NCBI GenBank assembly: GCA_038087875.1
Contig: CM075978.1
Coordinates: 180,110,001 to 180,174,000, forward strand
From: Malacoraja senta
Lineage: Eukaryota
Length of the DNA: 64,000 nt
Reading direction: 5' to 3'
Shown: positions 341 to 64,000 of the stretch, piece after piece
Layout of the letters: every line of letters starts with the position of its first letter
How positions within the stretch are numbered: position 1 is the first letter of the stretch
Program-made: the position numbers and the translations under genes
Notes under the pieces: model-generated
Databases searched by the model: none
Seen by the model: only the letters and a program-made list of their open reading frames with translations
What the model was told of the DNA's origin: nothing

Positions 341-3300
341 CTGAAATACAACATAAATAATTAAAAATGAATTTTGTTATAGAAAAGTAACACCTGATTT
401 ATTCTCCATCACTCCACGATTCCCAATGTTTTTCTTATGAAAAAGTTGGGGGGTGCATGAACAAACTATAGGATCCAGCTGAGATACTTGCTGGTCAATG
501 CAGGGAGGCTTCCCATATGATTCAAAGTTAGAGAACATCGCAGCCCCAAAATGGGTCATTCAGCCCCCCCCCCAATTCTTTGTTTGCCATCTGCATCATT
601 CCTAATGGCCTACATTAGGTGCATATCCTTATTTTGCTTATTTCAACATCTCGCTAAATGGCTCTCAAATATAATTACAATCACCTATGGTCATAAATTT
701 AAATAATCAGCATTCTGTAAAAAAACCTTTGACTAAAATCCCATTTAAAAATGCCTTAAGGCCATCTTAAATTTATGTCCACATGAGTTTGATACTTCCC
801 ACCATGGGAAAATAATTATTGCTACCTATGCCCATAAACTTTATATAGCGTTAGCAGGTCAGTTATCAGGCTCTTTTTCTTCAGAGAAAATAAAAATAGC
901 CTATCTAATCACTAATCTCCAATAACTAAACTACTTTAATCCAGGCAACATTTGCACTCTCTCCAGCATAACCATATCCTTCCTGTAGTGTGGTGACCAG
1001 TACGATCCAAGTAGGGTTTTGTAAAATTGCAACAAAAGCATTCTAACTTTTATATTTTATGGAAGATAGACATAAAATGCTGGAGGTCAGGCAGCATCTC
1101 TGGAGAAAAGGAACAGGTGACGTTTTAGGTTGAAACCCTTCTTCTTTATATCCACTGATTTATAAAGACAAACATGCCTTGTGCACAACGCTTACTATCT
1201 GCATTTACACTCTCTGGAAATTATGGGCTTAAAGCACAAGGTCCCTCTGTTCATCAACATCGCTTAGCACCCAAACATTTATTGTCCTGCATCTATCTGA
1301 ACAAATATACATCATCTTGCACTTGTCAAAATTAAATTCCATCTGTAAACTTACTAATCATACCCAAGTTCCCATCAAAACTATAACATACATAAAAAAT
1401 AACGAGAGTCCCACACTGATCCTCGTGATGTATCAGTATTCTGCCTAATTCGTTGCAGAATGCAATGTCTGTTGGAACTTGCATGCAAAAGGCAACATGA
1501 CTTGGTTACTGGGATTCCTAAATAAGATTTCATGGTTCAATGGTCCTTTATTGTCACAAGTACCAAGGTACAGCACGTAAGCATTTATTAAGCCTATATT
1601 AATTCCAAAGTTTTAAATCTCCTTAAGAAATTAATTTGAATTAATTCAGTTCATACCTCTTCATCTTCCCCTTTTGCAATGTATGAAGTGACACCACCAA
1701 ATTCCTCATCCCAGCCTGGAACAGAGAAATACGCATGTTCATTCTCCTAATCCCATCACATGTTTTCCTATACAATGTTTTGCTCTTCCCCTCAATGGTA
1801 TAACAAAAGCAAAGTTGTGATCCAGCATTACACCAGATGTGTAATACATATCCTGTAAATTAAAATCAGCATATTTACCTTCACAACCGCAGCTTAACAA
1901 GAGGTCTAGGGCAAATTCCGTGTTTTCCACATTGGTATCATGGATAAGTGTGTAGTATCCATTTTTCCAACGTCTTAATTCTCCTCGACAAACAGGAACA
2001 CCAGGCTCTGAAAAATAATTGATTGATGCATCTTCAAACTCTTTCACTTGCTTTTCATTGAGTATGTCAAGAACCAAACAATGTCTCCATTGTTATTTTT
2101 AACTTTACCATCTTATCATTTTTTAATTTTGTTGCCACACAATATTCATCAATGGACACGTTGATGCTCTGGCATTACTCCAAGATCACTGCTGCTCAAA
2201 TGTATTAAATTGTTGCTGAACGACCAACAGCTACAACTTTCTTCTCCCATTTCACTGTGTAGCATGAAGTCAATATCCACAACGTTCAACTGAGTACATC
2301 TGTGCTGACTTTATTAACTGTGTGGTATGTTGATTGACTGCTAATTGCAGCAAATCCTATTGAAGCTAATATTTCCTGAAATCTAAAATAAGGTGTCAAC
2401 TTACGTGTGCGGACATGGCACCGACGGACGAGAAGCCGAAGCAAAGAAGTCAAAGCCAAAGAACCGAATGGAAACGAGGCCGAAATGCCCCAAAAAACGA
2501 AAGAGTACTAAGACGAAACAGCAACTAACCGAAAGGATGAGACGCCTAAATGCAAACTAACCGAAAGGGCGGGATGCCTAAAAGCCAACTAACCGAAAAG
2601 CTGCGTCGCCTAAAAGCAATCTCACCGAACAGCCGCTCTGTCGAAACGCCACCAACCCGAAAGGCGCCGTCGCCTACAAGCAGAAAAGTCCAATAACGGA
2701 CATGACGTTGCAGGGGGGGGCGGAACTTGTCAGCGATTGGTCCAGACCCCCGTGTCCATCATATCACTGTGGAGGGATGAACATTGTCCCACAACTCCGC
2801 TCCACCCGACCCACAGCCGGTGGCCGTGGGAGAGTGGGGGCTGTCCCGAGGGATGCGCACCTCGGCCGCTTACAACTTGGTGCTTGGGTTCAGATTGCCT
2901 AGTCACCTATGGCTTGTGTGGAAAAATGACCCCCTCCCTCCCCTCTCCCCCTCTCTCCCTTCTATCTCACCTCCTTCTCTCTCCNNNNNNNNNNNNNNNN
3001 NNNNNNNNNNNNNNNNNNNNNNNNNNNNNNNNNNNNNNNNNNNNNNNNNNNNNNNNNNNNNNNNNNNNNNNNNNNNNNNNNNNNNNNNNNNNNNNNNNNN
3101 NNNNNNNNNNNNNNNNNNNNNNNNNNNNNNNNNNNNNNNNNNNNNTTTTAGGCGTCCCGCCCTTTCGGTTAGTTTGCATTTAGTCGTCCCATCCTTTCGG
3201 TTAGTTGGCATTTTGTCTTTGTATTCTTTCGGTTTTTTGGCGTTTTGGCCTCGTTTCCATTCAGTTCTTTGGCTTTGACTTCTTTGCTTCGGCTTCTCGT

Positions 3301-6300
3301 CCATCGGCGCCACGTCTGGGTACCGTCAATTTATTCAACTTCATCATGCCTCTGATCAACCTCACTGGCTACATATCTGCATCCCCCAAAACAAATTTAG
3401 TTGCTAACATCACACCATGAGGGTTCCATAAAAAAAAGGTGTTGTGCCTTCAGTAATCAGACTGATTTCTGAAATTTCACAGTTAAGAAAGAGGAGTAAA
3501 AATGTAGTCTGCTTCTGACTAACATAGACTTGGACATGTTAATAGCTTTAAACCCACCCAATTGTATTCACTATTTGATTCAGAGGGGATCAATATTGGA
3601 CAGTGTAAAACCAGTATTACATCCAACTTCGTTAAAATCCAGCTTCACTAATATCATCTAACTTGCAAGAAATTACCAGCTACAAGAGGAAAGCCCCTCG
3701 CTCTTTGGACAATCGTCAGCTGACCAACGACCTGAATGAGTTTTACTGCAGGTTTGAAAATCAGAAACGTAACCCTGGTACCCCCTCCCCCCCCCTCCCC
3801 AACCAACACAGCCAGACCCCAGTCTACAAAGAATGGACCCTGCATCCTCTCCTTCCCATTCACCACTTCACACCTACTTAAGGCAAGACTCCAGTATGAA
3901 AAGACTGGACCATTTCCCACCCCAACCACCCACTCACAGCCTGACCTCAGTCTGCAAAGACTGTGCCTTTCTACACCCACCCCCCTCCAATCACCACTTC
4001 ACACCCAATCACCCACACCCTCTGTGCTGCACAACATAACTTATCCAATATCAACAATTAAAATAGAGGAGGTGGAGAGGCTTTTCAGAGGACAAAAGAG
4101 CAGGAAATCTCCAGGACCTGACAACGTTTCCCCCTCTACTCTTAAGCTCTGTGCCAAACAGCTGGCACCGGTCTATAGACATTTTTAACCAGTCCCTGCA
4201 AACATGTACTGTCCCTGCCTGCTTCAAAGTCTCCACTATTGTCCCTGTACCCAAAAAGGCAAGTATTACTTGTCTTAATGACTACAGGCCTGTCGCACTG
4301 ACCTCTGTAGTCATGAAGACACTCGAACGGCTTGTGCTGGCCAAGCTGAAAAATATCACAAACTCTCTGCTGGACCCTCTGCAATTTGCATATCAGGCCA
4401 ATAGATCTGTGGATGATGCAGTCAACCTGGGCCTGCACTTCATCCTATAGCACCTAGACTGCCAGGGGACCTATGCGAGGATCCTGTTTGTTGATTTTAG
4501 CTCTGCATTCAACACCATTGTGCCAGCGCTACTACACTCCAAACTTTCCGAGTTGACTGTGCCTGAACCCCTCTGTCAGTGGATCACCAACTTCCTGACA
4601 GACAGGAAGCAGCATGTGAGGCTGGGAAAGCACATCGCGGACCCGCAAACACTCAGCATAGGAGCACCGCAAGGCTGCGTACTCTCTCCTCTCCTCTCTC
4701 TACACCAACGACTGCACCTCCACAGACACCTCTGTCAAGCTTCTCAAGTTTGCGGACGACACAACCCTGATTGGACTGATCCAGGATGGGGAGGAATCTG
4801 CCTACAGACAGGAAGTGTCACAGCTGGCATCCTGGTGCCGTAGCAACAACCTAGAGCTCAATGCTCTTAAGACAGTGGAATTGATTGTAGACTTTAGGAG
4901 AGCTCCCCTTCCCCTCACCCCACTCACCATCAACAACACCACAGTCACATCTGTGGAGTCTTTTAAGTTCCCGGGAACCATCATCTCCAAGGACCTTAAG
5001 TGGGGGGCTGCCATCGACTCCACAATCAAAAAGGCACAACAGAGGATGTACTTCCTGCGGCAGCCGAGGAAGCACAATCTGCCACAGGCAATGATGGTCC
5101 AATTCTACTCGGCCATCGTAGATTCTGTTCTCACCTTCTCCATCATGGTCTGGTTTGGCTCAGCCACCAAGCACAACACCTGGAGGCTGCAGCGAATCGT
5201 CCGATCAGCAGAGAAGATTATTGGCTGCAACCTTCCCTCCATTGATGAACTGTACACTGCAAGGGCCAGGAAGCGAGCGGGCAAGATAATCTCTGACCCC
5301 TCCCACCCTGGCCACAAACTCTTTGAATCACTTCCCTCTGGAAGGCGACTCCGGACTGTCAAAGCTGCCACAGCCAGACATAAAAACAATTTTTATCCAC
5401 GAGTAGTTGCGCTACTCAACAGCCAAAAATCTGTAACCTCCCTTTGATCTGGTATTTTGTTGGTTCACATGCTTGATCAATGGTGTTTTATCATGAATGT
5501 TTTATTATTATTAATGTTTAGTGTTTTCTGAGTCATTCGTAACTGTCACTGTATGTCATGTTGTTACTTGTGGGCGGAGCACCAAGGCAAATTCCTTGTA
5601 TGTGAATACTTGGCCAATAAACTTACTTACTTACTTACTTAACTTGAACAATTATTTTTTACCTGCCATAGTACCGAGTGATGACATCTGCCAATCCCTA
5701 AAATTAAATATTTTTAAAATAAATCTTACTTTGTGGACTGTCCGTTGGCATTGTTTTTTCTGTTGTTTCAAGAACACTGCCTCCTCTGCTATCATTGCCA
5801 TTAAGTAATGTTGAATCTGATTTCTCATCCTTTTCAGTGCTAGAGCATGCTTGCTCATTTTCATCAGACATCAGGTCATCTTCTTGCTCATCTTTTTCAT
5901 CATTATCTGAGGCTGCGAGGAAATGTAGCTTTAAGCCAGTGAAATTGGACAGAAACAGGAACATGGCCTCAGAATAAAAGAGCTTCATGCATTTGGCAAG
6001 AATGTCAGGAAAGCCATCTTCCTCTGCTTGATCATAGCATCTAAGAAACAGAGAGGCACTATCAGAGAGCATGCCACAAATCCAGGAAACACAGACCAGA
6101 GCTCTGAACAATAACAAGGTTTGTCACAAATACATTAAACAAATCTGGCAACCCATCTGCTATGAGCAGAAGCTCAAGTTAGCTTCTATTGTACAAAAGG
6201 AAACAACTGTGCAGCATTGAAAGACCATACTACTGTATAGATTGAAATTTTAGATAAAGTGGTCAAGCATGGCCCATTAAATCACCTGAGCAATATAATG

Positions 6301-9300
6301 AATGAGCCTGTGAACAGGTCATGATTCCTATGATCTCATGAAGTGGAATGAAAACGAGAGGGATAAAAAAGATGAAACTTTTACAAGCCTAGATATACAT
6401 TCTGTAGCACAAATAATGTTTTTTTCTATTTCTGAAATAATTAAGTGCAAGGGTGGTGACTGCCATTCTCTTCCATTCCAGGTTTAGATGCGCTTGATTT
6501 TTGGAGTAATACAACATTACAGAAAAGTCCTGCTGTAAATTCTGCACAGGTGCTTCTGGGTTAAGTATTCCATTGATAAGTGCATTTAAAAAAAATCATT
6601 CAACATCTTTAATATTCATGAATGCCGATCCTTCAGATTTCTGATCCACCTACCTTTTGTTGGCTGGTCCTCTTCTCTTCCATTTAATCTTTGGGTTAGA
6701 TATAGCCTCACATACCATCTGAAATTTTTCTTTCTGATCAGAAAATGCAGAAAAATGTTTGTTTTACTGTTATCGTCTGTGGTATTCACGCATTAACAAT
6801 ATTTTACATTTTGAAACTTCATTTCTTTCTTTTTTTGGATTCTCATCCTCTAATTGCTGTCATTTCATAGCTTTTGTTAATTTACACTCCACAACTTGTA
6901 GAACAAACTTCAAAGCCTGATAGTCAATACAATCCAGTGCGTTGACTTTTTATGCAAAATGACTGTTTCTTTGACTATGGCTCTCAATAATCTGGGCTGA
7001 CAGGGCAGTGCTGATTTGAAGAAACTGTACAATCGCTGAGATTCTATTTTTCAGATGATGCTGTTAATCAAGGTCCTCTCCCATCTGCCTGCCTAGGAGT
7101 CACACCAAAACATCCCAATGCAATGTTTAAACTAGAGCAGTGGAGGTCTCTTGGTTAACTGCCGTACATTAATCTATCTAATAATATTACTATAAGCGAT
7201 TATATAGTCATGCTTGCCATTTGCAAGATTACCATGCAAACACATCTATTTATGAACACTGAGAATATAGAAAATGCTGAAAATTCTCAGTTGGCCTAGC
7301 CCCAGTTGCAGCCTGACCTGTTGAGTATTTCCATATTTTCTGTTTTATTTTAGATTATCACCATGTATTCCAATAATATTTCACTAGCTGTGAAGCACTT
7401 TAGGACTTCCCAAGACCAAAAAAGTGCTGTGTAAATGTGATTTATTTTTTAATATACTCTCACGGAAGCAGAAATGTCAATAAAAGTATCTCCAATACCT
7501 TGACATAAAACCAAAAAGGAATTTTGTTGACCTTTGAAATCTGATATAATACACCTCTTTGGTTTCGGAATAGTTCCTGACTTCAAGGATCTTATTTTTA
7601 TGGCTACCTTAATGACCATTTGAAACAAAACCAAAAGATGTAACAAAATAATTATCTTGTAATCCAGATTAGATTCCTGGGCCTTCAAATTCTTGTTTCT
7701 GTGATCTCTCCAGGTGGTTTGATATAAACAGGGTGAATTAAAGATGATTTTACGTTTTTAAACTGCACTGCAGGTGAGATGTACAGAACACATAGCTAAC
7801 TTTAAATCTACAGTAACAGCAGCTCACAACTTTTTTCTATGTTGACTATTCCCTTAACATAATCTAAATAGATTAAGCCTCTGAATTCTCCACATGAACC
7901 TGGGATAAAACAACTTTTCCCCTGACATTATTTGCCTGTCTTAGACTTTTACAGTCAATGGCTGTCAGTAGCACTCCAATATCCAAGAAAGCTTTGAGTT
8001 TCTATAATGTTCTGATTGTCAGCATTCAATGAAATTAAAAAAGCCTCTCAAAGCAACCAGATGTAGATACCACCGATACATGACACCTGTGGGTGATAAT
8101 TATCACAAAACAATTAACAGTGAAAGCAGATACATAATATATTGACATTATAACAAAGAAATTAATTTACTCCGAAGACTTTTTCATGGACAAGGTGACA
8201 GATTCACATCCATTTTCCTATCCATGTGTGTGAGGCATTTTCTAAATTCAACCAAATAAGAGCCTGCCACACACTTACCTTGAAAAAATTCTTTAGAAGA
8301 ATTTCAGATTTTTCTTCAAACTGCTCCTGGATGTTCGCTTGAGCTGACATATCCATGTAAATTGGATTGATCCATTCATAAAGTATTTCTTCCTGAAACA
8401 TTTTAAGACAAAGCATGTCACAGAGGATCAATGTCTCATCACGATCAATATGCAACTTCCTGCTCAGTTGGAAGAAATAGAAACATAAACCGGCCATTGC
8501 ATCCCTTCAGATATAACATCCTTATCAAGATCACTTCTGATCTTTTGATTTAGCCGCAACCTCATGCACTAACCCTTGCTTTTAATTAACATCAATCCAT
8601 CTTTGTCTTGTTTACGTGAAGCATCTGTGCCTCCAAAGTGATCTTGGACACAGTGTCTCAGTTTATCATTTATATCCTTGGTCAAGAAATTTGTTATGCC
8701 AGTGTTGAATGATTAACCTCTCATATTGTACCTCTGATTTGATTCTAGAGACCCCAACCAGAGATTTTGTTATAGCCTTGTTTATCTTATTAAAGCTTGT
8801 AAGAATGTTGTATATTTCAATGGGATCACACAAATTCAAGATATCATTGACCCATCTCTTTAATCTATATCCATAAAACAAACATTCCTGCCCAGGAATC
8901 AATATGGCAAACTTTCTCTTTCACAAGTATAACCTTCCTTAAGTCAGAAAACCTGACCTGTACACATTATTCCAGTCGCAGTTTCACAAGGATCCTTTGT
9001 AATTGCAGGAATATGTTACTCTTGAAATCAAATCCTCTTGGACGAGGGCAAATATCATCTGCTTTCCTAATTCCTTGCTTTGCCTGCATGCTGACTTGCG
9101 GTGATGCACAATGACTCTTCTCAACCTCTCATGATTTAAAAAAATAAACTGTCTTGCTATTTTTTGCCACCTGCCAACTTTACTTAACCTGTCTGCATCT
9201 CCATATGTGACATTACCATCACAGCCCTCATTGCCACCTAGCTATGAGCAGCAGAATTACAGACTTGCATTTGATTTTCTCAAACATATCTTTGACATCA

Positions 9301-31689: not shown

Positions 31690-34600
31690 ATGTTGGCGAA
31701 ATTTCCTGTACGGTACATGGCGTTATGCGGTATAATTTGGCATGGTGAGTTTAGATATTTGTGTTGTTCCTGAATTGCAATTCATATTTTACATTTTTCC
31801 TGTTCACATCCGGCAGATATAGCAAAAATGCCCCTTCTATTTGGGTGCCCTTCCATGATTGTTTTGTATTAATTTGCTATTCTTTTCCTTATCCAGTATA
31901 TGCAACTAATTTCTTACTTAATTTTCGGCAGTTGTGGAAGTATCTTCGAGCTCAGTGTATCAATTTCCTAATGATGCAGATGTCCCCATCGGTGCAAACT
32001 TTACCATGTTCTGCAAATTTCCCATATCGCAAGATACTATTTCCGTTTTTTGGTGGAGAGAAGGCATGAGAACATCATTGGAACCAGATACGAGAAAACA
32101 ATTTCATGTAGGTAGCGGAAGGGGAACATTTGTTCTCCATAATGTCAATGTTGCAGACTCGGGAATATATTACTGTCAAGCAAAGTACCAGAATCAACAC
32201 ATCGGGAATGGAAGTGGCTGTCAGCAGACTGTGTTCGGTGAGTGTACATGTTCGAAAATTAATAGATTTTCAGTTCTCTGTCATTTACATAGAAATGCGT
32301 CATTTATAAAATGTTCCAACTAGATAAAATCCCGGTGCTAATAAATCCCAAGTAAGATACTGGAATGGACGACTTGAACTGCGTCTTGAACTGAAATGAA
32401 TAGCTGTGGTGGAAAGTCAGTTTTCCTTTCACAGAGGAAAGAAATGGAGAACAATTTTAGCAACTTTCCCCTAGATTAGGTCTTGTACGCAACATTAAAG
32501 ATATTCCACTTCAGCGTACAGCTGCTTCCCGTGTTCATTCATTGCCCAGTTATCTTTCTGATGCTTCGATATCCAAATCTTATATTTGACTCGACGCATG
32601 AACGTTTTGCAGCAGTAGCATTGAACTCTGAACATTCCCATAGTGAAGTATGCACCATTGAAAATCTCCATCCCAAGATCTGAAAAAACAATTGACCAAT
32701 CAATTGTGAGCACCGAAATGTAATCAATGCATGTAACTACACCCTAACAATGCACGTAACCGCCCGACTCGAGAAATCTGTAACATCTCTACTTTAATAC
32801 CATTCTTTTCAATAAAGGAAATACCGATAAAGTCCCAAGCGTTAAAGTTAACATAGAAAGCCAGTCATTTCCATTCAGAACATTGACACCTTTCTCCCAT
32901 ATTACCCAAATATTAACCCTCCTGGTATAATGTCTAAAATCGCTCAGTTTTTATATCCAGTGTTCAAAAAAATCCATGGTTAACCAACGTAATATATAAT
33001 TATAATATAGTTCACTGAAGTGTAATGGAAACATGCAATATCACTTTTTTTTTCTGCTTAAGATTCCCCAACTCCTTTGAAAATTGTTTCACTTGAAGAG
33101 AGTTTGGCTGCTGCAAAACTCGTGTGTAAAACAGATGCGTTTTATCCAGAGACATTAGAAATCTTCTGGAGAAAAAATAATGTGGAGATTCTAACCGGCA
33201 TTGAAACCGTGACATACAGGAATGCGGACCGATTGTATGAAGCTTCCAGCTTTTTGGAAATAGCGCAGCCTGCCCGGGGTCAAGATGTGTACACCTGTTT
33301 AGTATCGCATATCTCACTTAAGGTACCGGCCAGTTTCACCTACATCGTCGAACCAGGTAAGACTGGGAATATTTGCAGTTGAGAATGAGTTAGTAGCTGA
33401 TCAGAATAGCGGATTATAGGGAGAAAGAGTTAAGGTGAATCATTTTTACACCAACGCTTCAATGTACCAGCATTAATCATCCCAATGGGCAGATGATTAA
33501 TTGCTTGCACAATGACGACCTTAAGACAATTTTAAAAGAAGAAACGTGAAGTAGAATAATAGAATGCCGCACTTTAATGCGTGGGAGATAATTGCATTGG
33601 GAGGAAATCGATTGGAAAACGATAAAGGGCATTTCATAGAAGTCGAAAATGCTGGAGCAACTCAGCGGGCGAGGCAGCATTCATGGAGAGAAGGAACGGG
33701 TCAAGTCAAGTCATGTCCACATTATTTGTCACATACACATACAAGATGTACAGTGAAATGAAAGTGACAATGCCTGCGGGATTGTGCAAAACAACAGAAC
33801 AACAGAACAGTACAGAACCAGTATTTACATTTAATAAAAAAAGACACAACAGCAATTACTCCCTGGTGAGATCAGAGTTTACAGTCCTGATGGCCTGTGG
33901 GAAGAAACTCCGCCTCGGGTCGAGACCCTTTCATAGATGTCGCACGGACGAACGAGTTAGTAGACATAAGGAGCAAGAAAGTCAGGCAGTGATATGAGAA
34001 CAAATTACAAATTTGAAAATCAAATTAATACGGAATAAACATGACAAAAAAACAATGATTTGATAGGTAATGGGATTTGTTCTCGGACTTGCGATGTGTT
34101 TTGCGAGACCTCGCGTTTATGCTGCGTAGATTAAGAGGATCTGCGTAGATCAGGAATAGCCAGGTCTCTGGGTGGCAAATGCCAGAATGAAGGACTTGGA
34201 GGAAGCAAGATAAAGTGGGTGGCATGGAGTCCATCAATGTTACCGAAATGTAAATGTTATTGAAGGCATTCACGTGTGGTCCAAAAGTGTCATCAGAACA
34301 GAATTTGTGGCAAGGAAGAGAAATAATTGCGTTGAATCTCACGAACTATAATTGGAGAAATATCTGCTCCTCATACTTCTATAGACGTAGACGTAGACGT
34401 ACATGCGCGCAGACGTAGAGTTGCAGCTTTACAGCGCTTGCAGCGCCGGAGACCCCCGGTTCGACCCCTACTACGGGTGCCGTCTGTACGGAGTTTGTAC
34501 GTTCTCCCCGTGACCGCGTGGATTTTTGTCTGAGATCTACGGTTTCCTCCCACACTCCAAAGACGTACAGGTTTGTCGGTTAATTGGCTTGATATAAATG

Positions 34601-35776
34601 TAAATTGTCCCTAGTGTGTGTACGATAGTGTTAATGTGCGGGTTCACTGGTGGGTGCGGACTCGGTGGGCCTTTTTCCGCACTGTGTCTCTGAACTAAAC
34701 TAAAGACATATTTGGTGCTGAAGGGTGAGATGATATGCTCGGAGTGGGATGTCGATGCCATACAGACAAATAAACTGTTAAAAGTCAGTGCCTGTTTTGA
34801 GTAGAACCATAGAAAAGAAGAGAGAATAGAAAATAAGTATTTCATTCAAAATTGAGATGATAGATTGTGTAAGAAGGAATTACGACGTGCTTATACAAAA
34901 CCGTAAAATTTACATGCGGGTATTGCTACGAGGGTGAGTGCTACGAGGGTGAATGCAATAGCAAGAACATTATATGGCAATTCCATAGCGGATTTGTTGG
35001 ACAGCTCCAGTGGAATATGCAGTGGTGCCCTGAATGAATTGGTTCTCGTGCAAGTTATCTAACATTGAATTAGCTGATAGTTTTCCAGATGAATGGGCCA
35101 TTTCCACTGAAATTATTGAGTGGATTGAGTCTAAAGTCATGTAGTCAGATAAAATAGTCATAATCTTGCTGATCCAGATAGGATTCCAAGAGAGATACCT
35201 ATAGATGTATTGATATGGGAGAGATATTCATTCTTATCGATTATTGTTTGGTCAGGCCCTCTAATATCTAATAATACGTTGACTGGTGTCAATTTTATAT
35301 GTTAAATGTATAATGGTCTTCTGACCTGCCTTGGGCTATCTTCTTGTGCTAACCGCTCTCTGCAAAACGTGTTAAGGCAAATATTCAGTATTCAACCAGA
35401 AATATAGAAGGTTGATTTCCATTATCTGGTGTGGCATTGTAATAGAAAAGCAAACGTTTTTCATCGAAATGGCTGACCTTCGTGGAAGCAGCCATTTTGG
35501 AATTGGATTTGCTTTTCTTCACAAATCCCATCTTGAACGTGCAATTGGTATTGTTTGTATATTTTATGTGCTGTGTGGATTTAAAGACATCTTTGAAATG
35601 CTCTACCTCGTGCGCTATTTATGAACGTACTTACATATGCATATTTTTTACATTTTAATATTTTGTTCTTGTAGATCCCAATTCCATTATCTTGATTCTC
35701 ACGTGTGCGCAGGGCGGATTGGCAATTATAGCTCTGTTAATAATTTTTGCAGAACTAGTGTACAAGCCATTAAATG
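31690..35776 (+). CDS. IgSF receptor gene 1: leader, V(J-like), C1-set, TM (NKp30-like V plus B7-H6/tapasin/antigen-receptor-like C1); cytoplasmic exons uncertain, possibly to 39963
   Basis: Phase-1 exons 31690-31744 (MLAKFPVRYMALCGIIWH), 31932-32237 (V: FC..WWR..DSGIYYC..IGNGSG), 33063-33356 (C1: LVCKTDAFYP..W..YTCLVSH) and 35675-35776 (TM IILILTCAQGGLAIIALLIIFA) splice in frame with no stops. Confidence 0.9.
31932..32237 (+). CDS. Gene 1 Ig V-type exon with J-like G strand
   Basis: ggcag acceptor, G|GTGAGT donor; B-strand Cys, C-strand Trp, DxGxYxC, GNGSG. Confidence 0.93.
33063..33356 (+). CDS. Gene 1 Ig C1-set exon
   Basis: CxxxxFYP, W, YxCxVxH C1 signature; G|GTAAGA donor. Confidence 0.93.
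33645..33940 (-). mobile_element. Penelope pLTR fragment interrupted by a LINE 3' end
   Basis: pLTR halves ...gagaaggaacggg (33710) and gggtcgagacccttt (33917) flank a segment starting tcaagtcaagtca. Confidence 0.55.
34418..34703 (+). mobile_element. HE1-like V-SINE in gene 1 C1-TM intron
   Basis: gtagagttgcagc..ggttcgacc tRNA head, central domain, gaactaaactaaa tail. Confidence 0.85.
35675..35776 (+). CDS. Gene 1 transmembrane exon
   Basis: ttgttcttgtag acceptor, hydrophobic run of about 22 aa, G|GTAAGA donor, phase 1/1. Confidence 0.8.
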
Positions 35777-37899
35777 GTAAGAGCGCAGCCTATTTCAACA
35801 AGAGTTTATATTTGTAAATTCGAAAATTAACATAGTGATCATTAAGAAAGATACGAGATTTTCAAAGGTCTATCTGATTGCTAATTCATTATGAAATTTA
35901 AACTATAACTTGTAGTGAAAACATTTCGCCTCGCCATTCGAATTATTCACCAATCTATCGCACATCAAGATAGCAATTTTACCTGAAATTAATCATCTTT
36001 TACACTTTGTAGATATGAATTCATCAAACAGCATAAAATAATAATTTAGAGCTTGAGTTTCTCTAATGATTTGTAACAGTTGTTAACATTGATCCGTTTG
36101 ATCTTGATTTTAATTGGAATTGTGAGAGATAACCCGGCTAATGATACGCTATCGTCTTTACGCAATTTGGTTCACGTCAAGATCCATTAAATTGAGGGTA
36201 GTATAGTCAATGAACAGGAGAGTGTAATGCACTGGAAAATATATGGCATCATTTTGACTTCTAAACATCTCCAGACAGACCTGTGCCTTATGTAAGGCAC
36301 ACTTGAGAAAATAAATGTAATTAGTATCAAAGGAGTAAGTTACTTTTAACTGATCATATTTATTCGATGTGATTTGCTTTTCTGTTTCCAAGGCGTTATT
36401 AGAAATTACGTGGAAGCAAATCGAGTGAAAAACGGGTAAGCATAAAATTCAATTTATATTCATGTTTGAATAAATGAATGGAGTCGTAGCCGAAGTATTA
36501 GATTCAGCAATTAAAACATATGTAATTTATCTTCTAAATATCGTAGGACATTATATAGAAGGAAAATACTCTGTCTGTGGCAACGCCTCTGTTGACGTAT
36601 GTATCATCTGGTCAATTCAAATTTCCCTTTCAAACTTATTGCATAGTACTTTCAGTCATATACTCCATATCAGAAACGTTAAGCGCATGCGTAAAAAAAT
36701 GCGGCATATAGAGTATTAAGTGGAGACATATATGGTTATTTACTTTGGCGAGAAGAATCAAAAAGTAATTAGGTAGCGATAAACTAATAAATATAAGTGT
36801 GTAGAGTGATCCCGAATGCTAGAGAAAGAACATACGAGATTTTTATTTGCTACAAGAAGAACAACTGTTTTACACTGCCCTTGAACATACGGGATTTCGT
36901 AAAGTTGCTGTTATTCTGCCCTAATTTGAGCGGAGTACATCAACTAAGACCCCAATTAGTAACATAAACATTGGTATTAATTCCTTGTTTCTGCACGCTG
37001 CGCCTTTACTTATGACTAGTCAAATCGGTTGTACTTCCTGTTTCAATCCTTATCTGGATTGTTCCCTGTCAAATCAAGCAGATTAGCATAACCCAGGACA
37101 CTATGTCCCTGTATCTAGTTCCTTAGCTAAATCAAGTTGGAATAGTACTTTATGTTTCTCAATGGCTGCTGCGTCTGGAAGTCAGAAGAAAGGAGTGGCC
37201 AAGGGCCACAGGTTCTGATTGCGAGCTAGGGGTGGACGTGAATACCTCGAAGAGGCATGAGAACAAGTGATATTCTCTGGAACACTATTAGTTATTCTGT
37301 TTGCCAGGCATGTTTAAGAATAGAATAGTGGAAGTTGCATCCTTGACAAGGCCTGCAAGGGGCCTGCTTCAAGCTCAATCCAATTCATAATTGCAGTTAA
37401 AAATTTGCAGCTAACCGTATCAGATCCGCATAATCAGGAATATTATGTGCATTTATCCAACTAGGTCGATAAGCAGCAGCATTTTAAGTACTTTTCTTTT
37501 ACACATTTTCTGGATGAAGGCCTTACTGGTAGGGCCACCGCGTAATATCCCGCCATAATTGCAAAGAAAATGGGGTGCCTTCTTGAAAGGCTGAATATGA
37601 AAGTCACTTATTAGCCGAGATCGAAATGCTGTTCAAGTTTCGTTTAGTTTAGTTTATTGTCACGTGTACTGAGGTACAGTGAAAAGCTTTTGTTGCATGC
37701 TCACCAGTCAGCAGAAAGACAATACATGATTACAATCGATCAATTTGCAGTGCATAGATACATGATAAGGGAATAACGTTTAGTACAAGGTAAACCCAGC
37801 AAATCCGCTCAGCAGATCCGCAAACCAGACAAGGATAGTCTGGGGCGTGGGTACGGCGTGCTGTGTCTGCTGAAACATTCCAAATGGAACAGAGCTTTG

Positions 37900-38260
37900 T
37901 GCAATCATCATCTAACATCCCCAGTTGTGACCTTAGCATGGCAGTAAAATGTTTTGATAAAGGAGCTGAAGATGGCTGGCCATAGGATATTGCATTGGAG
38001 AACATCGAAGGAGATGTCCCAGGCTGGGAACTCCAACAACCACAACCATATTTTCTCCTGAAAGAGGTAAACTCTAACTATCGATTGTTCACTTTGATGC
38101 CCAGTGAATTCCATTTTTCTGGGGCTCCCTATTTTCACAGTTAGTCAAATGCTGCCTTAAAGTAAAGGGTGCTTGGAACAGTAATTTTGCATGTGAGGTA
38201 TTTGTGCCTGACCACCAGTTTGAATACTTGAGGTAAGTTCCAACCTTGGATATGCCCATG
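37900..38260 (-). mobile_element. Old CR1/L2-like RT fragment
   Basis: Reverse complement resembles ggttgtggttgttgga..cccagcctgggacatc..cagccatcttcagct RT region. Confidence 0.45.
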
Positions 38261-60400: not shown

Positions 60401-62884
60401 ATGTCTGCGGAGGTTGCAGTTAGCTACATGGCTTTCCTGAGTACAGTTTGGCAAGGTACGCTTATTTTCCTGAATACAAAATCTTACTTTGGAAAATTTC
60501 ACCTTGATCAGGCACTACATACTTGATTGTAATCCCTGTCGAATTCGATTTATGCTGGATCTTAATTTTATTTCTGTATTTTATGTCTCTTGTGTTTTGT
60601 TTTTGCATTTAATCACCTTAAACAACTTCCTCTGACCTTTATTTTTTTTGGTAGCCGCCACAGTAACGTTTAGCAAAGTGGAACAATTCCCGATTGTTTT
60701 GCATGAAGCCGTAGGTGGAAATGTTTCCATTTTCTGCAAATATCACATATTGCAAGTTATTCCTGACGTCTACTGGTGGAGAGAGAGCGAGAATGCATTT
60801 ATAAAGCCAGACAGCAGAAAGCAATTTTATATAAACAAGGCCAGCGGTTCGTTTACTCTGCTGAATTTGAGTGTCGCAGACTCTGGGAAATATTATTGTC
60901 ATATCAAACAGCAGCAACAACCAATCGGAAATGGAAGTGGCACGCTGCTAGCTGTATTCGGTAAGTATCCTTACAGTGGAAGTCAATGTTATCATCCCCA
61001 TACCATGGAGATAAAACTCGGTGATCGCGAGAAAATGAAAATATTGGTACTCAATAAGAGTCATGTGACGCCGAATTCAATTTATACCTCGGAAATAAAT
61101 TGATACAGAGGGTGCGAGACTCAGGTAAACCAGTAGATACTGGGAATATTCAACAGGTCGGGTTGAATCCGTCGCGTGGAAAGTAGTTTGTCCTCCTTGT
61201 CTCTTCGTTTTTCTCATGGTCATTTTTACATCAAAGTTGACGTAGCCCTGTCGACTCACATTACACAATTCTGTGTTACTGTCTAGAATTATCGCGATAA
61301 TATTCGAATCTGCTTTAAATCCGAAGTGCTGATTTTGAAATGTTGTTAGAATTGCATTTGCATCTTTTTGGAAACGCGGCTTCAAATTGCGAATGGAATA
61401 TTTTCACAAATGTTCATACTGGGCAGATGTGTGTGGTAGTTTTCAAGCGAGAAACGAAAGTTGTTTTTATCCTGGAGCTAAAAAAAAGTACTGGAACAAC
61501 TTTTTCCAAAGAAAGGTCCCGACCCGAAATGTCACCCGTCCAATGCCTCCACAGATGCTGGCCAATTCGCTGAGTTATTCCATCATGGGGGAAGGACCAT
61601 GTTCAGTTCCCCCACTTCAGTGCGTGTGATGATTTATTTAGCGACGCTCAACTTCCAGTATGCCACTTCCCCACATTGAGAAATATTCCAGTTCTCCCTT
61701 CGCGTTCGGGAAACATTTATCCTGTTGAAATGTGTACCCTCGTAAACCTCCATTCCGCGCATTAAAATACAGTACTGTCCAAACACTCGCAAGGACCCAG
61801 CATTCATCCGCACCCTACCACTTGATTCTAGACAGCTGTGACAATTTCATTTTGTTCACGTGGCAATCTCTGAAATTAAAACATCTCGACAAACCACCTC
61901 GTTTTGAGGGAAACACAAATGTCTAATACCAATTGCGCCCGCGTTAAATCTTATACTCCTATTTAGAGCAGCGGCGCCTTTCTTATAGGTCACTAGTTCG
62001 TAGACTCGCATTCTTCGTGCTTTTAATTGACCTCGTCACTTTCCTGCCGACGGGAAAGCAGTTTATCACAATAGGACAACTTAAAACGGTTCAAACAATA
62101 GCGCGGTTAACTCGTCATAATAACATTGTGATACAATTCTCAAGTGAGACAAACGAGTAAACGTCCATTCCAAGGAAACAAAATACATAATATATTTGTC
62201 TCTTTGTTAAAGCTCCCCCAACTCCGTTGAAAATCATTCCGTTTAAAGGAACTTCATCGCAGTCTCGGAAACTTGTGTGTAAAACGGCGAGCTTTTATCC
62301 GGAAAAAATAGAAATCTCCTGGCGGAGAAATAACGAAGAAATTCTGACCGGAATAGAAACGGTAAAAAATAAAAGCACAGAGGGATTGTATGAGGTTTCC
62401 AGTTTTTTGGAAGAAATTAAACTTGCTTGGAGCGACGCCGTTTACACCTGTTTGGTATCTCATGTTTCCCTTGAGGTGCCAGCAGCTCTCAGCTACATCG
62501 TCAAAAAAGGTAAGATTGTCAGTACTTGCAGCCAAGAGCGGGTGTATATGCCCAACCTGGTTAGAATTTAAATATACAGCTGCTCAAACACGGGGACAAT
62601 GCCTAGATGCGACCCGTGTTTATTCGTAATGAGAGATCAATGTTTCAAAATCACAAATCAATCATGGAGCAAGAAGCTCAAAGGCTAATTGAGGTGTTCT
62701 GTGTTATCGCTAAATCCCTAAATGTGTATATATTTCTATATATTATATCGTTCACATTTTCCCTGTTTCTCTCTTGATCCATAAGACGCAGATAAAAACC
62801 TAATTATCGGATGCGCAGTTGGTGTCTTGGCAATTTTAGTTTTGGCCATTATCTTGATAAGACACCAATTAAAGGCACAAAATG
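60401..62884 (+). CDS. IgSF receptor gene 2 (paralog): leader, V(J-like), C1-set, TM; tail unresolved and may run past the window
   Basis: Exons 60401-60455 (MSAEVAVSYMAFLSTVWQ), 60655-60960 (V, IGNGSGTLLAVF), 62213-62509 (C1) and 62786-62884 (TM LIIGCAVGVLAILVLAIILI) splice in frame; leader and V exons are the same length as in gene 1 (55 and 306 nt). Confidence 0.9.
60655..60960 (+). CDS. Gene 2 Ig V-type exon with J-like G strand
   Basis: ttttggtag acceptor, G|GTAAGT donor; C, WWR, DSGKYYC, GNGSGTLLAV. Confidence 0.93.
61505..61585 (+). mobile_element. Penelope pLTR relic in gene 2 V-C1 intron
   Basis: aagaaaggtcccgacccgaaatgtcacc...cacagatgctg..cgctgagttattcca. Confidence 0.5.
62213..62509 (+). 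CDS. Gene 2 Ig C1-set exon
   Basis: LVCKTASFYPEKIEISW...YTCLVSHVSL; G|GTAAGA donor. Confidence 0.93.
62786..62884 (+). CDS. Gene 2 transmembrane exon
   Basis: Hydrophobic run followed by RHQLK; G|GTGAGA donor; an alternative in-frame acceptor gives a start at 62792. Confidence 0.8.
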
Positions 62885-64000
62885 GTGAGAATTATACACA
62901 TTTTACAGTATTCTCGGTCTTAATCATAATGGTGGTTAAAAAAACCAAGGGCAGTTAATGGTATTCGATTGCAAAACAATGAAATAATTGAGAATAAAGC
63001 TGACCATTAACAATGACAAAAAGAAATCTCAAGATATAAATCTTACATCTTCCCATGTCAATATTTCAATCGTCGTATCTTTTTGTTGTCTCCATCGGTT
63101 ATTGTTCATGATTTGCAACTTGTTACCATCATCGCAGTTCCAAATATTTACAGGAAACAATTATGCGCAGATCTTGATTGTGTTGGCGCAAAATAGGTTT
63201 TAGGTCACTACTACTCTGATAGCCATCCACAGTTTGATTTCCATTGTGATTTTGAGGTATAACATGACAGCTGAGGCCTATAACATTTCGTTGCATTCAA
63301 AGATACATTCCATTGTGTTTCACACCTTTAAGAGGATGAGAAGGTAATGTATAAAACACAACCTTATAACAATGGGTTATGCTTAAATCATCCATATGGT
63401 GCCCGCGGGCGTTCTTCATTTGGGCGACAATATCGATTGGCATCAAAGTACAACCTTCATGGGCAGCAACTCATACAAGCAAATCCGACAGGGTGAATAA
63501 CTTCGTATTTTTCAAACAAGAGTGTACTTTACTTTAGACTTTTAGACTTTAGACTTTAGAGTGTCTCAAAGAAGGATTACATGTCAGCAAATGGCATGTG
63601 TTAATTCCATAGAATCTTAGAATGTCGTAGGAGAGAAATAAACTATTCTATCCGCGTTACCTCTTTATTTTCATAATACCTACAATGACTATTTTAAAGT
63701 TCCCGGTGAATCTACTTTCAGCATCCATTAATGAGTGCATCAGGGTTGTAAACACGAGAGAACATGGCGCGTGGATATCAATGTGGGAACTTTTGCAGTT
63801 ATCCGTTGATTGAAGTGAATATATATTTAACGGCTCCACATTGTGATAATGAAAGTTAATTTCACGTACATCTCAGAAACATTTAATCTCATAACCTTAA
63901 AAGTGTAAATCGTCTGATAATTTGGGCATTTCATTAATTGCGCAGATTGCGAATCCACATTGCTAGAATTAACAACAGATTGCGTACTCACTTTAACATG

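Follow-up and report, generated by a model that had tools for sequence, protein, structure and literature searches.

Two old V(J)-C1 genes of the skate Malacoraja senta, members of a probably SIRP-like receptor family of cartilaginous fishes

Do two tandem genes, each with an antigen-receptor-like variable domain already joined to its J-like strand, encode non-rearranging relatives of the T-cell receptor (TCR), or receptors of another kind? The question is raised by a stretch of 64,000 nt from Malacoraja senta (assembly GCA_038087875.1, contig CM075978.1, positions 180,110,001 to 180,174,000 of the forward strand; hereafter the window), in which two genes, here termed A and B, combine a leader, a V(J) exon, a C1-set exon and a transmembrane (TM) exon. 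A sequence-only reading of the window had described the pair as TCR-like innate receptors. The analysis presented here indicates that A and B are probably old paralogs within a family of type I receptors found only in chondrichthyans, with a paired layout resembling that of SIRP, in which A and B would represent the inhibitory kind with an uncharged TM segment. Most likely, they act as inhibitory sensors rather than as TCR-like antigen receptors.

The core of each gene consists of four exons (positions within the window):

31690-31744, + strand: gene A leader exon (55 nt; ATG at 31690, GT donor after 31744; ends in phase 1)
31932-32237, + strand: gene A V(J) exon (306 nt; AG/GT sites; phase 1 at both ends)
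33063-33356, + strand: gene A C1 exon (294 nt; Pfam C1-set, E 3e-11)
35675-35776, + strand: gene A TM exon (102 nt; from hydrophobicity scan and splice sites; ends in phase 1 at a GT donor)
60401-60455, + strand: gene B leader exon (55 nt; ATG, GT donor, phase 1)
60655-60960, + strand: gene B V(J) exon (306 nt; from splice sites; G strand GSGTLLAV)
62213-62509, + strand: gene B C1 exon (297 nt; Pfam C1-set, E 3e-12)
62786-62884, + strand: gene B TM exon (99 nt; uncharged TM; from splice sites; ends in phase 1 at a GT donor)

As read from the sequence, the exons of both genes are flanked by AG and GT, phase 1 is kept throughout the core junctions, and the spliced frames are open. The splicing itself is predicted. 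The leader peptide of gene A can be aligned with the leaders of other family members, and its TM exon is a homolog of the family TM exons. In both genes a single C1 exon is present, with the TM exon next to it. Each V exon is closed by a J-like G strand (GSGTLLAV in B, GSGCQQTV in A) directly followed by a GT donor, so that V and J-like strand lie in one exon. Neither strict nor relaxed searches detected a recombination heptamer in or near either V exon, and no heptamer-spacer-nonamer arrangement was found anywhere in the window. The proposal of two intact, non-rearranging genes with a germline-joined VJ, a common leader/V/C1/TM plan in phase 1 and no recombination signal sequence (RSS) near the V exons was thus borne out. 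Identity between A and B amounts to 47% for V, 58% for C1 and 39% for TM, and no further copies of either gene were found within the window by tblastn. In both proteins the core of the TM segment lacks charged residues, and the stalk is only about five residues long and contains no Cys.

How old the two genes are was judged from a tree of 58 ectodomains. Both A and B fell inside a batoid clade (support 100/98), in which gene A was sister to ten myliobatiform genes (100/96), while gene B grouped with genes of Pristis and Hemitrygon. Since each gene is accompanied by its own batoid orthologs, the duplication that separated A and B predates the batoid radiation. Between A and B, synonymous divergence (dS) was about 0.8-1.2, and the ratio of non-synonymous to synonymous divergence (dN/dS) was 0.48 for V, 0.24 for C1 and 0.36 for TM. 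A comparison of the gene B V exon with a contig of a related skate gave a similar ratio (dN/dS 0.44; 12 non-synonymous and 7 synonymous changes). Both genes were present in genomic contigs of four related species, where all listed indels were intronic. A and B are therefore two old paralogs under long-term purifying selection, and the earlier claim of long-term selection on both copies agrees with their separate batoid orthologs and ratios of 0.24-0.48. These data also bear on the possibility that at least one of the copies is an untranscribed relic or a decaying pseudogene with a frame left open by chance. Such a reading could draw on the run searches for A and B, which returned only genomic runs and no RNA run, and on the degenerate motif in the putative terminal exon of gene A (see below). 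Yet at the dS observed between the copies, each retains four open exons and every family-invariant residue; together with ratios below 0.5 and indels confined to introns in the four related species, this makes decay very improbable.

The relatives identified for the two genes came from cartilaginous fishes. The spliced gene B protein retrieved 17 protein matches, with E-values to family members from 1e-101 to 1e-30, and a word-indexed search with a family profile gave 72 matches, all from sharks, batoids or Callorhinchus. In an exhaustive profile search the best 150 matches were crowded by giant multi-Ig proteins, and the start of the bony-vertebrate proteins was not visible among them; the 10 lowest-scoring single-stretch matches among those listed were all chondrichthyan. 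The AlphaFold cluster library held only one close entry (E 1.6e-22, 33% identity), whose accession series suggests a shark origin, followed by an entry at E 7.8e-15 and 23% identity; no bony-vertebrate cluster of the AlphaFold database was near the family. Alignments of the V and C1 domains (A1, A2) showed that the residues invariant in the family are all kept in A and B. No publication describing the family was found in the literature on SIRP, ITIM (immunoreceptor tyrosine-based inhibitory motif), C1-set, VJ-C1 or paired receptors of cartilaginous fish. The suggestion of a possibly undescribed chondrichthyan family therefore holds: its members occur in sharks, rays and chimaera, that is, in every cartilaginous fish group checked.

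Automatic annotation has given these proteins a variety of names, e.g. SIRP-alpha-like, NCR3 ligand 1-like, tapasin-related-like, TCR beta-like, Ig lambda-like, MHC class II-like, PD-L1-like and CD276 homolog, and the names are inconsistent even between close paralogs. It might be argued from the RefSeq names SIRP-alpha-like, NCR3LG1-like and tapasin-related-like that A and B are chondrichthyan orthologs of a named family, i.e. SIRP, B7-H6/NCR3LG1, tapasin-related or PRARP, obscured by divergence; the best superpositions of the whole model, which were obtained with SIRP-alpha/beta, point in the same direction. However, identity to every named protein was only 17-24%, and the Foldseek E-values for Ig lambda, TCR-beta, B7-H6 and SIRP-alpha lay within one order of magnitude of each other. 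Domain content differs as well: SIRP has two C1 domains, the V domain of B7-H6 lacks the J motif, and tapasin has an N-terminal domain. Considering also the disagreement among the automatic names and the lack of a nearby bony-vertebrate cluster, we regard orthology to a named family as unlikely.

Nearly all members of the family have the order V-C1; a few are V-V-C1, and V-C1-C1 was seen in 2 of about 70 proteins. Two kinds of tails occur: (i) an uncharged TM followed by motifs of the ITIM or ITSM (immunoreceptor tyrosine-based switch motif) type, such as LTYAAL, TEYAQL and TAYATL; and (ii) a charged TM followed by a short tail. By analogy, this is a paired inhibitory/activating multigene family whose logic is apparently nearer to that of SIRP than to that of antigen receptors. 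Both A and B belong to the uncharged-TM kind. Members of the family would be built from a split leader, a compact V(J) domain joined in the germline, a single C1-set domain, a stalk of very few residues, a TM helix and a tail with tyrosine motifs. The V domain would presumably bind its ligand on the membrane-distal face; phosphorylation of the tail tyrosines would then recruit SH2 phosphatases and damp cell activation. For A and B themselves, we infer expression, an inhibitory signal and a ligand.

Because the TM exons of both genes end in phase 1 at a GT donor, neither gene stops there, and cytoplasmic exons must follow. For gene A, three candidates were located:

36857-36903, + strand: candidate cytoplasmic exon with ITIM LFYTAL (starts in phase 1; either closes in phase 0 at a weak donor or continues to a stop at 36924)
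38899-38960, + strand: alternative candidate tail exon with ITIM-type motif SDYIAI (weak tblastn match to a shark tail; AG/GT, phase 1)
39886-39963, + strand: candidate terminal exon (phase 0; stop at 39963, AATAAA at 39983, 20 nt downstream)

Together, they allow two in-frame models of gene A, with five or six exons. The candidate at 36857-36903 was recognized by tblastn to batoid tails and by phase-consistent splice sites, and it is better conserved among related species than the flanking intron. Just upstream of it, at 36834-36840, contigs of related skates carry about 470-480 extra bases. The candidate at 39886-39963 is a homolog of the family exon with LTYAAL, as seen in recurrent tblastn matches, with a degenerate motif (VIYAAQ), and the context of its acceptor is common to the sawfish terminal exon. 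The matching sawfish block, which lies upstream of the ortholog of gene B, has kept neither acceptor nor frame; 39886-39963 is therefore not a firm terminal exon. It is embedded in a non-coding block conserved between sawfish and skate (541-890 of the sawfish locus L001 versus 39826-40169 of the window), the flanks of which are conserved at least as well as the putative exon inside. The block may be a regulatory or untranslated-region element rather than coding.

For gene B, a search of the 1.1 kb that remain in the window (62885-64000) gave no candidate tail exon. In sawfish, the ortholog of gene B ends in an exon with the ITIM VTYTAL, located about 1.9 kb past the TM exon, and at this spacing the skate equivalent would fall just beyond position 64000. 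The tail exons of both genes are thus candidate or predicted ones.

The first domain of A and B was recognized by Pfam only weakly as V-set, with a score below that of Ig_3 or I-set, while the following C1-set domain was called in both genes. In searches of PDB sequences, the best single-domain matches of the V profile were VNAR (44 bits), followed by TCR beta, TCR alpha and CD79b (39-41 bits); VNAR was outranked by multi-domain I-set proteins only because their scores sum over many domains. The best single-domain matches of C1 were Ig lambda C, UrIg2 C3 and IgM. In the model of the gene B V domain predicted with AlphaFold2 (AF2), the predicted local distance difference test score (pLDDT) was 91.6 and a C'' strand was missing. 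Strands C (37-42) and D (55-59) have no C'/C'' pair between them in the AF2 models, and 53 residues separate the cysteines. These models do not agree with a strict V-set domain, which has C' and C'' strands; the V domain has a compact form. Shark VNARs were its nearest solved folds and made up most of the top Foldseek matches (Z 15.1, identity 24-29%), by a small margin over TCR V-alpha and the light-chain V domain (Z 14.0-14.3; 40 bits). Both domains are thus nearest to antigen-receptor domains in sequence (VNAR/TCR V and Ig lambda C/IgM/UrIg2), as the sequence-only reading had supposed.

These affinities invite the idea that A and B together form a non-rearranging, TCR-like heterodimer whose chains associate by their V(J) domains via the G strands with the GxG bulge and by C1 domains comparable to C-alpha and C-beta, and that the tandem pair was kept for this purpose. 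The genes do form a tandem pair, each lineage has been retained across batoids, the G strand is of J type (GxGT in gene B), and both domains find their nearest sequences among Ig, TCR, VNAR and UrIg2. The extra Cys in the G strand of gene A might also be cited, given that V dimers of UrIg2 are disulfide-linked through their G strands (PMC12227049). Against this, the stalk has no Cys and the TM no charge, and the aromatic residue that precedes GxG and packs in the V-V interface is Asn in both A and B; the G-strand Cys of A is not found in orthologs of the A group. Moreover, a large family with variable copy number and with V-C1-C1 and V-V-C1 forms fits independent receptors better than obligate pairs, and the predicted shape is extended. 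We therefore consider an A/B heterodimer quite unlikely.

The Cys of gene A (GSGC, 32219-32230) stands where the family has Thr. By analogy, a covalent dimer formed through it is conceivable.

The shape of the ectodomain was assessed on the sawfish ortholog of gene B, whose two domains form an extended rod in the AF2 model (pLDDT 90.9). Superposition on known structures gave TM-scores of 0.73-0.77 for SIRP-alpha/beta, 0.70 for B7-H6 and about 0.4 for Ig and TCR chains; the shape is predicted to be of the extended SIRP/B7 type and not of the bent Ig/TCR type. Atlas searches by feature and by shape returned generic V-C1 clusters only. It is in the signalling part that the earlier description as TCR-like receptors finds no support: the TM is uncharged, the stalk lacks Cys, and ITIM tails are found in relatives and in the sawfish ortholog of gene B; the extended predicted shape of SIRP/B7 type and the compact V without C'' also run counter to it. 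The uncharged TM, the stalk without Cys, the ITIM tails, the paired activating members of the family and the extended shape together point to a SIRP-like inhibitory innate receptor.

Several points weigh against this inhibitory reading. ITIM-like motifs arise easily and are no proof of inhibition. In gene A, the best donor of the candidate exon at 36857-36903 is weak (GTTGCT), and the degenerate terminal motif together with the loss of the acceptor in the sawfish counterpart may mean that signalling by gene A is weak or different. The 3′ end of gene B lies beyond the window and its tail therefore outside it, and the inter-domain geometry comes from a monomer prediction. Finally, the runs found for both genes are genomic, and their contigs showed no splice joints when aligned to the window.

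Among known systems, SIRP-alpha/beta come closest in layout. As in the chondrichthyan family, an N-terminal V domain with a J-like G strand is followed by C1-set, inhibitory members with an ITIM tail stand beside members with a charged TM, a motif of the LTYAxL type is used, and the ectodomain is extended. In contrast, SIRP has two C1 domains, whereas A, B and most family members have one; identity is 20-24% in the Foldseek alignment, no better than with Ig lambda or TCR-beta; and the V domain of the family is compact, without C'', and no bony-vertebrate member was seen. Rearranging TCR and Ig chains share the C1-set domain after V with A and B, but they are built from separate V and J segments flanked by RSS, unlike the single VJ exon seen here, and they have a charged TM for CD3/CD79 and a stalk Cys, both of which are missing from A and B. 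VNAR is similar to the V domain of gene B in fold, in compactness without C'' and as the best single-domain sequence match; what sets it apart is the RAG-mediated joining of V, D and J segments, along with a long complementarity-determining region 3. The likeness to VNAR may stem only from shared compactness.

Germline-joined VJ domains are also known from other receptors. NKp30 (NCR3) has such a domain ending in a G strand of the GNG(T/S) type, but it has no C1 and carries a TM arginine for CD3-zeta, whereas A and B have a C1 exon and an uncharged TM; NKp30 was absent from the top-ranking PDB sequences found with the family V profile. Membership of A and B in the NKp30, B7-H6, tapasin or CD28 families was rejected on domain content. 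PRARP is reportedly (Fu et al. 2019 J Immunol) a linked pair of genes with VJ, C, TM and tail that is absent from mammals. Compared by description only, it resembles A and B in being a set of non-rearranging VJ-type genes of the immunoglobulin superfamily proposed as relics of the antigen-receptor precursor (PMC10751288); PRARP and NKp30 have been named as other VJ relics of this kind (PMC10751288). UrIg and UrIg2, the described non-rearranging VJ-C1 genes of elasmobranchs (PMC12227049), have in common with A and B the split leader, the single-exon VJ, the C1-type domains and the occurrence in cartilaginous fish (PMC12227049), and UrIg2 is among the best PDB sequence matches of the family C1 profile. 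They differ in that UrIg is a secreted molecule with three C domains, the C domains of UrIg2 number up to nine to eleven, and both are single-copy genes linked to the major histocompatibility complex (MHC) or an antigen-receptor complex, forming disulfide-linked homodimers (PMC12227049). The present family, in comparison, has one C1, a TM helix, ITIM-type tails and many genes, and adjoins OGFOD1.

Studies of UrIg and UrIg2 (2023-2025) have revived the question of how the antigen-receptor gene was built before its invasion by RAG, and they predict a two-domain VJ-C1 ancestor; such a gene is drawn as the precursor of UrIg/UrIg2 in Fig. 2 of PMC12227049. One might propose that this VJ-C1-TM family has survived as a descendant of the precursor, likewise of two domains, from which UrIg, Ig and TCR chains arose, that its compact V is the nearest germline, never-rearranged relative of NAR V, and that it marks the kind of cell-surface receptor gene on which the RAG transposon, or a later recruitment of NAR V, acted. 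We hold this to be rather improbable. The family has exactly the VJ-C1 plan and many members, and thus offers material for testing the ancestor prediction with V and C1 trees and synteny. To comparative immunologists it offers a SIRP-like paired-receptor system at the base of jawed vertebrates. The gain from the window alone is smaller, namely two more old and intact members and an A/B split older than the batoid radiation.

Other features of the window concern its repeats, its assembly and its neighbouring gene:

45525-46519, no strand: assembly gap (N run), intergenic; left flank a GATAGA-type purine microsatellite
49950-52748, + strand: long interspersed nuclear element (LINE) copy with endonuclease and reverse-transcriptase open reading frames (ORFs), a 745-aa ORF and then a 183-aa ORF
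42155-43809, − strand: LINE copy, likewise with ORFs for endonuclease and reverse transcriptase
1739-8497, − strand: exons of an OGFOD1-like gene; ORF 8204-8497 matches Pfam Ofd1_CTDD, E 5e-7
2985-3145: second assembly gap (161 N), within the OGFOD1 region

The gap at 45525-46519 lies between gene A, whose last candidate exon ends at 39963, and the start of gene B at 60401, in repeat-rich DNA with LINE fragments or reverse-transcriptase ORFs on both sides. Order and orientation of the conserved non-coding blocks on either side of it, from 39.8 kb to 64 kb, match those at the sawfish locus L001. As the gap is intergenic and the blocks are colinear, it has no bearing on either reading frame, and judging from the sequence its two sides appear to be correctly ordered. 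The two LINE copies fill a large part of the 20 kb separating A and B; the sawfish spacer measures only about 9.5 kb. Just before the gap, at 44116-45161, about 1 kb of G+C-rich sequence contains long Gly/Arg/Pro-rich ORFs on both strands and might represent either the 5′ end of a LINE or a repeat rich in CpG. The introns of both genes contain very high-copy repeats (33591-33950, 34315-34860, 61416-61663 and 63524-63647), at which the contig depth summed over all skate runs aligned was 1e4-1e7, compared with 5-100 elsewhere.

The OGFOD1-like exons at 1739-8497 place the receptor genes next to OGFOD1. To our knowledge, OGFOD1 is not an MHC-paralogous marker. Two further ORFs, 1739-2077 and 5704-6117, look like neighbouring exons of the same OGFOD1-like gene.

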